Shown here: positions 27,401 through 30,914 of the stretch, one piece after another | How the letters are laid out: each line of letters opens with the position of its first letter | Numbering within the stretch: the stretch's first letter is position 1 | Origin: Macrostomum lignano | Lineage: Eukaryota | Direction of reading: 5' to 3' | DNA length: 53,334 nucleotides | Assembly (NCBI GenBank): GCA_002269645.1 | Contig: NIVC01004248.1 | Span: forward strand, 1-53,334 | Position numbers and translations under genes: made by a program | The notes under the pieces: model-generated | The model's database searches: none | Told to the model about the DNA's origin: nothing | What the model saw: the letters and a program-made list of their open reading frames with translations, nothing else

Positions 27401-30400
27401 TTTCGTCCGTATTTACGAAAGAGTAAAGAGTAGTAACTAGTATAGTGTTAATAATTAATTTGTTGGTTCTATATACTACTTAACAAGCACATATAAATAA
27501 GTAGAGCAGGTGCATCTACGAGAGTCAGAAATGCTAGTTTTTTAAGTATTGAAGCTATTTATCGCTTACTTTTGTTACCTTTGATGGTTTTTCAGAATAA
27601 CTTATTCATTGGGAGTCCGACCAAATTTAAACCTAATTTCAAGGGAATCCAACACAAAAAAATGACCTTCAAGACTTCCCACTCACCCACAATGGGACCT
27701 TGAGGGAATCCCGCCCAGGAGACAGAACATGACCTATAGACGGGTATATTAACCCACCCAGGAATCCCACTCAGAACATGATCTTTAGTTGGGAGTCCCA
27801 CCCAAAACATGACCTTGAGTTGGGGAATCCCACCCAGAATATGACCTTGAGTTGGAGAATCCCACCCAAAACATGACCTTGAGTTGGGGAATCCGACCCA
27901 AAACATGACCTTGAGTTGGGAAATCCCACCCAAAACATGACCTTGAGTTGGGGAATCCCACCCAAAACATGACCTTGAGTTGGGGAATCCCACCCAAAAC
28001 ATGACCTTGAGTTGGGGAATCCCACCCAAAACATGACCTTGAGTTGGGGAATTCCGCCCAAAACATGACCTCGACGTGGGAAATCCCACCTAGAACATGA
28101 CCCCTAGTTGGGGAATTCTATCAATCAAATGACCTTGAACCAGAAATGAGGATCTAATGTGACGTTAAATGGAGAAAAACCATTTAGTAAATCGTCTCTC
28201 TTCTCACCATGACAGTCTTGCTGTTGCCACCCAGGGCATTTTGCAACAATTTCGTTAGCACCGAATCTCGGAAAGGAACTGAAAAAATTGAAAAAAAAAT
28301 TTTAATCAATGCCTAATTAATTCATATACGAGCCGCTTTCCAAGAATTTGATTTCTAAGAAAATCTCACCCTTCACTCTTGTATTGCCAGCTGCCTGGTC
28401 AGCCAGAGCACTGATGCAGTTGCCCAGTGTGCTCAACGACAAGTTTATGGCCGCTCCCTCCTTCATCCGCTCCCCTTCCGCTCCCGTGAGCCCGACTCGC
28501 TCGCTGCGGAAAAGTTTAGATTAGCTAGAGATTAGAAAGTCGAACTAGATTAGAGAGAATAGATCACGGGGCTTGAGATTAGATCCTATGAAATAGAAGA
28601 GATAGAAGAGAATCTGCAGGATAAAATTAGATCTAATTGGTGAGACAAAGATTAAAATTAGAATCGAAAACGAGTGATTTTATTCCAATATGTATGAGAA
28701 AAGATCATAGCTGAGATTAGATTCGAGAGAACAAGATTGAATGAGTTAGATTAAATCATAAGGGTAAGAAAGGAGGTTGAGATTGGATCATAGGGATGAG
28801 ATAGGAGGTTGAGAATAGATTATAGGGATAAGTTGAGATTAGATCATAAGGGTAAGATAGTAGTTTGAGATTAGATCATAAGGATGAGATAGGAGGTCGA
28901 GATTAGATCTCATAGAGATAAGAAAGGAGGTTGAGATTAGACCTCATAGAGATAAGATAGAAGGTTGAGATTAGATCATAGGGAGGAGATAGGAGGTGTG
29001 AGATTAGATCAAAACGGATGGATTAATAAGCGTGAGAGAAAAGCTAGGAGACGCCACAAAAATTTACCTGCCAGCCAAATCCACCAGATTCATCAGCGAT
29101 GACTTGGTCATCTTCTGGCCGCTTTCGTTGCTGTTTTTCTGCACAAAGTTGATGGCCACGATGGTGTGAGCGCGACTGCTGGTGGCGTTCATGTTGGTGG
29201 CGGCCACGGATCGGTTTTTTGAGCCTTCGGCAATTTTTGCCTCGATCTGAGCATAGCTGCTCACAGGAGAGGACGAGAGGCCTTCAACGTAGAAGCCTTT
29301 GGTTTGGTGCTGGCGGATCTTCAAGCTCTCTTTGTTGCGTGTCTTCGTGGTGACCAGCAGATCGCGAACTTTCTCGTTGTAGATCTCTATCATGCTGACT
29401 GACACCTGGAGTGGGATTGGGGATCGTGAGAGGCTGCAGGAAGAGCGACACCTGTGTGTTAGACAGCAGTGTCACTCACCTGCCATTCGTCATCTTTAGC
29501 CGCTCCAGCTCGCTTGTCCTCGATGCCGGCAAACAGCTGTTCACAGGTGATGGGCACAATTCCCTTGTTGGGCCCGTAGCCAATGATGGAGTAGGACTTG
29601 CCGCTGCCCGTCTGCCCGTAGGCGAACAGACTGCAGTTGAAGCCTTTCCATGCGTTGTTCAGCATACCGCGGCCTAGGTCCTCGAAAACTCGTTTCTGTG
29701 GTGGGCAGACAGATAGATAGATAGATAGATAGATAGATAGATAGATAGATTGATAGATAGAGAGATAGATAGATAGATAGATAGATAGATAGATAGATAG
29801 ATAGATAGATAGATAGATAGATAGATAGATAGATAGATAGATAGAAAGATAGATAGATAGATAGATAGATAGAAAGATAGATAGATAGATAGATAGATAG
29901 ATAGATAGATAGATAGATAGATAGATAGATAGATAGATAGATAGATAGATAGATAGATAGATAGATAGATAGATAGATAGATAGATAGATAGATAGATAG
30001 ATAGATAGATAGATAGATAGATAGATAGATAGATAGATAGATAGATAGATTGATTGATTGATTGATTGATTGACAGGTTCTCACCTGGTCCGCATACACG
30101 GGACTCTCGGGCTCATAGTAGCCATCAGGTGTGACCCTGTATCCGTCATGCGACCAATACGAATAGTCAAACGCGAAGGAATTCTTTTTACCACTGGTGC
30201 TGGTTATGGTTGTCTGGTTGCCTTTCATCTGTATGACCATTTTGCTGTTGTGACTCATTTCTCGGTCATCGTGCAGACGCCAAAGCAGCAAATATTGTGT
30301 AAAGTTAAGGCAAATGGTAAAAAATTGCGATATTTATGCATAGAATTTATTGTCGAAACCCTTTTTTATTTTTTAGGTCAGACTTTTGAATAACTAACAG

Positions 30401-30914
30401 ACTAAATTTACCAGTTTCTATAGATATACATGTATATACGAGTAGTTTTCAGGGAACAAATGCAAGACGGCATATTCAGTAATTATGTCTCGTGTTACGA
30501 ATAATATTAATTGCTTTTGGTATAAATTATTTGAAATCTGCGCTGTCTATGTAGCCGTTTGTTGTTTTATATGCTTCTGTGCAATCATCCATATATGTTA
30601 TAATTATTACACTATGAGATTCAGATTACACAATTAATTGTAATTATGCAGATAATTATTAAGTTAGAAAATCACGCTAATTAGTTTCAAAGTCAGCATA
30701 ATATATTAGCCCCATTTTTATAATGCGCTAATAGTCTCGAATATATGTCTCTAAATTTATATTTGATATCTCAAAAATTTAACCTTGTAAATTGGAACTT
30801 GGTAGTCACTTCCCAAATAGGTGTAGTTAATAAGCTGTTTTAGGTCTCGATCGAATTATTTAAAAAGGATATGAATGGCCTCACTCGAACTGCTACTTTA
30901 ATATTCTCAGCCAT
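21468..30914 (-). CDS. KIF28: Kinesin-3 family KIF28/KLP-6-like motor (motor, FHA, C2-like tail, C-terminal CaaX), about 1000 aa, 14 exons
   Basis: Exons 30914-30873, 30270-30085, 29695-29480, 29405-29068, 28503-28370, 28278-28208, 26329-25836, 25453-25125, 24728-24574, 23676-23254, 22684-22427, 22263(or 22308)-22153, 22062-22006, 21656-21468; all phases consistent. Motifs [74 protein letters not shown], and FHA-like [13 protein letters not shown]. The subfamily call is by recall. Confidence 0.9.
21815..21980. repeat. 8-9-bp TACTCAAC(C) repeat, kinesin intron 13
   Basis: Read directly. Confidence 0.8.
22843..23226. repeat. 41/42-bp G-rich minisatellite, kinesin intron 10
   Basis: Unit GCGGAGGCCTGGATCTGGGGGTTGGTTAATGGGGTGGGGGTT. 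Confidence 0.9.
23728..24500. repeat. 21/22-bp minisatellite (CCCAGTGTCTTGATGTTCTCT), kinesin intron 9
   Basis: Tandem copies; produces 7-aa-period spurious ORFs. Confidence 0.95.
24857..25070. repeat. 15/16-bp repeat (GGTGCTGGCGCCCTT), kinesin intron 8
   Basis: Reverse complement of the unit at 32410-33178. Confidence 0.9.
25480..25830. repeat. (CAGA)n microsatellite filling kinesin intron 7
   Basis: Read directly. Confidence 0.98.
26362..27185. repeat. 23-bp minisatellite (AAACTTGGCGCCATCTCTGACCT), kinesin intron 6
   Basis: 23-bp period. Confidence 0.95.
27765..28125. repeat. 32-bp minisatellite (CCCACCCAAAACATGACCTTGAGTTGGGGAAT), kinesin intron 6
   Basis: 32-bp period. Confidence 0.9.
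28530..29015. repeat. Degenerate ~32-bp purine-rich repeat (GAGATTAGATCATAGGG...), kinesin intron 4
   Basis: Recurrent GAGATTAGATC. Confidence 0.75.
29708..30072. repeat. (GATA)n/(GATT)n microsatellite filling kinesin intron 2
   Basis: Read directly. Confidence 0.98.
30271..30872 (-). other. U12-type (minor spliceosome) AT-AC intron, intron 1 of the kinesin, 602 nt
   Basis: 5' end ATATCCTTT directly after codons VRPF. Branch-like TTGCCTTAAC at about 30313-30304. 3' end TCTGCAC directly before codons DDRE, restoring RVRPFxxRE in phase 0. Confidence 0.9.

Follow-up and report, generated by a model that had tools for sequence, protein, structure and literature searches.

A minor spliceosome is the normal state for a non-nematode animal, and the AT-AC or 'A-type' subtype of its U12-type introns was reportedly defined by Hall and Padgett, Tarn and Steitz, and Burge et al. 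U12-type introns, the AT-AC subtype included, were reviewed by Turunen et al. 2013 (PMC3584512), where the 5' splice site as well as the branch-point sequence are given as the features that define the class. Phase 0 is under-represented among these introns (Moyer et al. 2020, PMC7367187). As most animals have conserved their minor introns (Olthof et al. 2024, PMC11347168), finding one is ordinary, and knowledge of minor introns as a class is unchanged by the case described here. We analyzed a 53,334-nucleotide (nt) stretch of DNA from Macrostomum lignano (GenBank assembly GCA_002269645.1, contig NIVC01004248.1, positions 1 to 53,334 of the forward strand), referred to throughout as the window, which encodes a kinesin on its minus strand. 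Judged from its splice signals and from comparison with other animals, the first intron of this gene is very probably a U12-type intron that hides the true first coding exon.

The intron resembles the U12 AT-AC class in its ATATCCTTT donor, its TCCTTAAC-like branch site, its AT-AC termini and the deep conservation of its position, as well as in being the single such intron of a gene whose other introns are GT-AG. It departs from the class in being a phase-0 intron and in the placement of its branch site, which lies 34 nt from the 3' end compared with approximately 11-13 nt in the class. The AT-AC introns of U2 type described by Wu and Krainer 1997 share the terminal dinucleotides but have neither the ATATCCTT donor nor the TCCTTAAC branch site, signals whose types are both present in the window intron.

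The probable first coding exon and its splice signals

Exon 1 of the kinesin was read directly from the minus strand (30873-30914) as ATG GCT GAG AAT ATT AAA GTA GCA GTT CGA GTG AGG CCA TTC, 42 nt or 14 codons that end in phase 0. The predicted start codon of the kinesin is the ATG at 30914, which stands in the context AAAATGG with an in-frame TAA eight codons upstream, and the N-terminus encoded by exon 1 is nearly identical to the N-termini of orthologous kinesins. Without splicing, the frame from this ATG closes after 24 codons. A preliminary description of this DNA had remarked that the exon was absent from the list of open reading frames (ORFs), and this is borne out: the list has a minimum of 35 amino acids, so the 24-codon unspliced ORF is missing from it. 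The coordinates given in that description for exon 1, the donor, the terminal AC and the start of exon 2 were all exact on the minus strand.

The bases right after exon 1 are ATATCCTTTTTA, and the U12-type 5' splice site within them, ATATCCTTT (30864-30872, minus strand), occupies intron positions +1 to +9 and matches RTATCCTTT at nine of nine positions. Intron 1 (30271-30872, minus strand; 602 nt, 29% GC) begins with AT at 30872-30871 and is proposed to end with AC at 30272-30271, in the context ...GGCGTCTGCAC. The boundary reads ...TTGCCTTAACTTTACACAATATTTGCTGCTTTGGCGTCTGCAC on the intron side and GATGACCGAGAA on the exon side, and exon 2 opens with GAT GAC CGA GAA at 30270, continuing as DDRE. 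In position, the proposed terminal AC is homologous to that in the YAC/AAY..RE of orthologues, where the slash marks the splice junction. A putative branch site, GCCTTAAC (30304-30311, minus strand; second A at 30305), matches TCCTTAAC at seven of eight positions and is the sole TCCTTRAC-like 8-mer in the 602-nt intron. It falls within the -55 to -5 range, anywhere in which branch sites are scored by intronIC (Moyer et al. 2020, PMC7367187).

If these signals act as in known U12-type introns, the U11 small nuclear ribonucleoprotein (snRNP) would pair with the donor ATATCCTTT and the U12 snRNP with GCCTTAAC, bulging either A30305 or A30306 as the branch adenosine, and the U4atac/U6atac.U5 tri-snRNP would complete the minor spliceosome that removes intron 1. 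Splicing would then join 30873 to 30270 (TTC/GAT) to give RVRPF-DD-RE, and exon 1 would contribute the start codon as well as strand beta-1 of the motor domain. We infer from the intact signals that the minor spliceosome removes this intron in M. lignano, and a working minor spliceosome in the source animal can reasonably be assumed on the same grounds. Expression of the full-length motor would depend on minor splicing only if no other first exon exists.

The placement of these signals is difficult to reconcile with chance. RTATCCTTT occurs once in the 53-kb window, at the kinesin donor, where 1.35 occurrences are expected, so the count alone is unremarkable. Its position, however, is directly after the F codon of RVRPF, and the chance of a match at one fixed position is 2e-5 at the base composition of the intron; the joint chance of this donor and of CCTTAAC no more than 45 nt from the acceptor is approximately 6e-8. 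The protein motif [VI][KR]VAVRVRPF likewise occurs once across the six frames of the window. We enumerated every frame-keeping donor-acceptor pair with GT/GC-AG or AT-AN termini, and U2-type solutions were rejected in that each in-frame GT/GC-AG pair deletes RVRPF and/or RE. The 90 nt that precede exon 2 hold no AG. The earlier statement that there is no in-phase AG alternative therefore holds, since all such combinations remove conserved residues. Assignment to the U12-type class is thus supported by the nine-of-nine donor, the seven-of-eight branch site, the AT-AC ends, the lack of a U2-type solution and the orthologous introns described below.

Candidates for a second U12-type intron were also considered, and the other RTATCCTT matches (window 1037-1044, L006 19972 and L005 24148) were all rejected for being without coding context. 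The match at window 1037-1044, on the plus strand, is a second ATATCCTT lying in AT-rich sequence and is probably due to chance.

Orthologous introns and public gene models

Genomic loci of nine orthologues were fetched through protein matches, a route that is blind to intron type. Eight of the nine carry a U12-type intron at exactly the same phase-0 position, seven with AT-AC and one with GT-AG termini. The AT-AC set comprises Pecten maximus and Pinctada imbricata (Mollusca), Ridgeia piscesae (Annelida), Priapulus caudatus (Priapulida), Cyprideis torosa (Arthropoda), Saccoglossus kowalevskii (Hemichordata) and Desmophyllum pertusum (Cnidaria). In all seven species ATATCCTTT follows right after RVRPF, a TCCTTRAC-like motif stands 10-14 nt before the terminal AC, and exon 2 opens with AAY-NNN-(CGN/AGR/CAC)-GAR. 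The window intron agrees with them in position, phase, donor 9-mer and termini, and its exon 2 conforms to a shared N/D-x-R/H-E opening, whereas its branch A lies at 34 nt as opposed to their 10-14 and its exon 2 starts with Asp (GAT) where theirs starts with Asn (AAY). Intron length varies from 84 nt to 5.1 kb among the relatives. A comparison of the intron position in KIF28 orthologues, which the preliminary description had proposed, thus recovered the same U12-type intron in orthologues of six phyla; this positional conservation, together with the best Pfam fit at the junction, supports the U12-type AT-AC assignment made there.

The remaining two loci differ from this arrangement. In the hookworm Ancylostoma ceylanicum (L007 6001-6135) there is no intron after RVRPF and RVRPFNDREK is contiguous; nematodes have largely lost minor splicing. 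In Biomphalaria glabrata (L001 10046-10155) the same position is occupied by a 110-nt intron of the GT-AG U12 subtype, GTATCCTTT...TCCTTAAC-11 nt-AG, in which GTATCCTTT shares positions +2 to +9 with the window donor and 11 nt separate TCCTTAAC from the acceptor; it differs from the window intron in its terminal dinucleotides, GT-AG as opposed to AT-AC. We interpret the Biomphalaria intron as an A-type to G-type subtype switch within molluscs, and such changes are called rare by Turunen et al. 2013 (PMC3584512). When ten orthologous donor sites were aligned, positions +2 to +9 were invariant (TATCCTTT) and +1 was A in nine of the ten, whereas variation was seen at synonymous positions of the exon and was free in the intron from +10 on, a pattern that is as expected under selection on the donor signal. 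Read in this light, intron 1 is an ancient AT-AC minor-class intron, in phase 0 right after the RVRPF codons. It would represent an unusually clean case of such an intron, one that has kept its position from before cnidarians and bilaterians split, with one subtype switch (Biomphalaria) and one loss (nematode) among its relatives.

Paralogues provided some further observations. Saccoglossus has two head-to-head KIF28-like genes approximately 4.7 kb apart (L004 4305-4355, minus strand, and 9057-9098, plus strand), both with an AT-AC U12 donor directly after RVRPF; the donor was read in both, the branch site and acceptor in one paralogue only. In a kinesin-3 paralogue of Bugula neritina (P0024; L010 4542-4795), which shows no U12 signals, the donor is an ordinary GT located 8 nt further 3', following RPFNQR. 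For the Mytilus paralogue P0042 there was no encoding contig on record.

A scan of public metagenome contigs for GTNMGNCCNTTYATATCCTTT returned at least 120 matching contigs; as only contigs with the donor motif could match, the scan speaks to breadth rather than to frequency. Among the matches listed, at least 55 contigs (at least 44 of them distinct) encode [VIL][KR]VAVRVRPF upstream of ATATCCTTT, almost always with a nearby ATG, and all of those that also carry exon 2 (at least 26 among the matches listed) are AT-AC. These contigs hold more first exons of this kinesin, from host or eukaryotic DNA.

The preliminary description had also held that gene predictors often miss exons of this type, and four public models bear this out. 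The models of Pinctada (P0004), Saccoglossus (P0025), Desmophyllum (P0018) and Ridgeia (P0044) are without the first coding exon and begin inside exon 2 or in intron read-through. In all four, the missing exon and its AT-AC donor ATATCCTTT were found 0.8-5 kb upstream of the annotated start (Pinctada L003 4848-4889; Saccoglossus L004 9057-9098; Desmophyllum L005 8891-8944; Ridgeia L009 9115-9156), and the models can be corrected from these coordinates. For annotation, the consequence is that the motor would have its true start codon and its strand beta-1 in a 42-nt exon skipped by predictors that allow only GT-AG introns. The public models of Pecten, Priapulus, Cyprideis and Biomphalaria already use the junction between exon 1 and exon 2, so the intron is implicitly known already. 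Among the papers searched we found none that names KIF28 together with U12 or minor introns, and those supplementary gene lists of minor-intron papers that were checked contain no kinesin-3 names.

Branch-site spacing and the choice of acceptor

The exact 3' end of intron 1 is less certain than its class, and the branch-site spacing weighs against use of the AC at 30271. The distance from the second A of GCCTTAAC (30305) to the intron end is 34 nt, whereas the other 31 orthologous introns with both ends available have spacings of 10-16 nt, which leaves the window as the single outlier among 32 (for Ridgeia, which has two tied motifs at 27 or 10 nt, the nearer one at 10 nt was taken). Dietrich et al. 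2001 are said to have found that nearer 3' sites are activated once the spacing exceeds approximately 20 nt, and that distal scanning is not performed by the U12 spliceosome; 34 nt would be roughly twice the limit reported for U12-dependent splicing. An optimum of 11-13 nt is given for U12-type introns, with the distance important for recognition (Turunen et al. 2013, PMC3584512), and branch-site spacing has been called a well-defined constraint of minor introns (Olthof et al. 2024, PMC11347168). Adenosine is absent from the 22 nt that precede the terminal AC (30273-30294, minus strand, TTTGCTGCTTTGGCGTCTGC), which leaves no place for a nearer branch point, and a scan of the last 60 nt and of the whole intron for a closer TCCTTRAC-like 8-mer found only GCCTTAAC. 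U12-type introns characteristically have no strong polypyrimidine tract ahead of the 3' splice site; in the window intron the last 20 nt before the terminal AC are 70% pyrimidine, a tract broken by G residues. Two in-frame acceptors lie closer to the branch site (30292-30296, minus strand): an AA that ends at 30295, with the branch A 10 nt away, and would add YLLLWRLH to the protein, and an AT that ends at 30292, with the branch A 13 nt away, and would add LLLWRLH. As to the splicing machinery, no Rfam family of any RNA, minor small nuclear RNAs included, reached its gathering score in the 53-kb window, a sample too small to inform.

We nevertheless kept 30271 as the likeliest 3' end, because, past the first 8 nt after the branch site, no AC or AG occurs before it, because of its homology of position with the orthologous acceptors, and because it gives the best Pfam score. 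With the proposed junction, profile positions 1-300 of PF00225 align straight across at 303.8 bits, compared with 296.4 bits for the eight-residue insertion, 297.3 bits when DD is left out and 294.3 bits when exon 1 is left out. On this evidence the AC at 30271 is probably the exact acceptor used. The long spacing lowers confidence in the exact acceptor and not in the class, which is defined by 5' splice site plus branch-point sequence. Of the preliminary description, the U12 AT-AC signals stood, but the certainty with which it placed the 3' splice site did not, in view of a branch site 34 nt away and far outside the range of the orthologues, a spacing on which that description had not remarked. 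For the full proposal, in which the minor spliceosome joins the donor to the AC at 30271, 34 nt past the only branch site and across an adenosine-free stretch of 22 nt, our assessment is only slightly favorable. If true, it would represent natural use of a distal 3' splice site by the U12 spliceosome together with branch-site turnover in a conserved minor intron, and the 34-nt spacing would serve as a natural test of the reach of the U12 spliceosome.

At the place where orthologues have TCCTTRAC, the window reads TGCTTTGG; this may be a decayed ancestral branch site, although we offer this as speculation. A tandem duplication (ATTTGC occurs twice) was considered as the origin of the extra spacing and rejected after local alignment against 2000 shuffles (p = 0.25).

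The main rival explanation accepts the U12 donor and branch site but has the AA at 30295 or the AT at 30292 used as the acceptor, so that YLLLWRLH or LLLWRLH would precede DDRE. Both sites are in frame and stop-free, and their spacing falls within the 10-16 nt of the orthologues and near the 11-13 nt optimum (PMC3584512), where 3' splice-site selection in U12-type introns is also described as error-prone; A-type minor introns with AT-AA and AT-AT termini are found in nature (de Wolf et al. 2021, PMC8280824). The open frame of the insertion is weak evidence, because eight stop-free codons are expected by chance approximately two times in three. No orthologue has any insertion here, and in all of them exactly two residues separate RVRPF from RE. 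With the eight residues inserted, the Pfam motor score drops by 7.4 bits and beta-1 becomes separated from the aligned domain, and it is the distal ...CTGCAC/RAT that is homologous in position to the orthologous acceptors. We therefore regard use of a proximal acceptor as unlikely, if worth keeping in mind. The same outlying spacing, and the TGCTTTGG found in the window at the place of the orthologues' TCCTTRAC, could alternatively mean that the 3' part of the intron is damaged and its proximal branch site lost, with poor splicing or retention as the result and with a kinesin copy that is weakly expressed or becoming a pseudogene. Such decay is improbable for a gene in which exons 2-6 and the downstream exons are open, with 63-66% identity to orthologues over 329 residues, and in which the P-loop, switch I and switch II motifs are intact and the donor is perfect. 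A replacement branch-site motif within 45 nt would moreover arise by chance with a probability of only approximately 0.003, which suggests that the motif is maintained.

Two further explanations do without a minor-class intron at this position and are less probable still. The 42-nt exon could be a chance ORF or a relic, with the kinesin starting at the ATG at 30258 (MSHNSK...) or at another exon upstream that is joined by the major spliceosome. That ATG is present, and the orthologue models P0006, P0018, P0025, P0044 and P0050 start at a similar internal Met. Yet each of the four public models checked has the missing exon and AT-AC donor upstream of its annotated start, and a start at 30258 loses beta-1 and lowers the Pfam score by 9.5 bits. 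A start elsewhere upstream would have no AG acceptor available in the 90 nt before exon 2, and the exon-plus-signal arrangement would occur by chance with a probability of approximately 1e-7 or less, so that we consider the exon very unlikely to be spurious. Least likely of all, and barely credible in our view, is removal of the AT-AC intron by the major (U2-type) spliceosome. The donors known from U2-type AT-AC introns are of the ATAAGT type, compatible with U1, and are without ATATCC. The window donor by comparison is a perfect U12 consensus and invariant across phyla, and a U12 branch-site motif goes with it in every orthologue. Toward the U2-type explanation, the end of the intron is pyrimidine-rich, rare introns of this kind do exist in the account of Wu and Krainer 1997 as cited in PMC3584512, and 85 major AT-AC introns are mentioned in PMC8280824.

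The kinesin gene and the rest of the window

Translation of exons 1-6 gives a 329-residue N-terminus that matches PF00225 with an E value of 1.7e-90 (residues 10-329 on profile positions 1-300). The best named relatives are KIF28P proteins of Biomphalaria (66% identity), Pecten (63%), Ciona (63%) and Priapulus (60%), and no database protein was more than 66% identical to the window kinesin. An FHA-like exon at 25455-25147 aligns to the FHA regions of the orthologues. From the best matches and this exon, we infer that the gene probably encodes a kinesin-3 of the KIF28/KLP-6 type.

Exons 2-6, all on the minus strand, are joined by ordinary GT-AG introns. Exon 2 (30085-30270, 186 nt, located by tblastn) ends ...VYADQ and is followed by a GTGAGA donor (30084); intron 2 (29696-30084, GT-AG) is filled by a (CTAT)n array, which Tandem Repeats Finder (TRF) reported with unit AGAT at 29707-30070. 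Exon 3 (29480-29695, tblastn) includes the P-loop region and ends DDEWQ before a GTGAGT donor, and exon 4 (29068-29405) includes SSRAHT and NLVDLAG, ends in phase 2 and is followed by GTAAAT. Exon 5 (28370-28503) ends NTRVK and precedes exon 6 (28208-28278), both located by tblastn. Kinesin exons continue downstream from 26329 to approximately 22400, with the FHA domain included.

Nearly every long intron of the kinesin (window 22771-30070) has its own tandem array. In addition to (AGAT)n at 29707-30070, these include 32-nt units at 28739-29019 and at 27761-28116, a 23-nt unit at 26388-27179, (GACA)n at 25481-25831, a 16-nt unit at 24868-25062, a 21-nt unit at 23730-24516 and a 42-nt unit at 22771-23225. 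TRF found no tandem array in intron 1 (30271-30872), while each of the other long introns examined holds one, in agreement with the earlier description of intron 1 as alone in this respect.

Elsewhere in the window, an LRWD1-like gene lies on the plus strand at 9545-15055, with LRR_LRWD1 at 9545-9949 and WD_LRWD1 at 13226-13735 and 14273-15055; the best named matches of its WD exon are flatworm proteins with 47-54% identity. Taken with the molluscan proteins that match the kinesin best, they hint at most at a spiralian invertebrate. An ORF with a NAB NCD2 domain is found at 8074-8877. A 28-nt minisatellite, CTCAGTTGCTGGGCCAGCCTCCCAGATC, is repeated in up to 34 copies in three non-coding stretches (7650-8090, 15081-15630 and 18552-19517) and gives long spurious ORFs in several frames.

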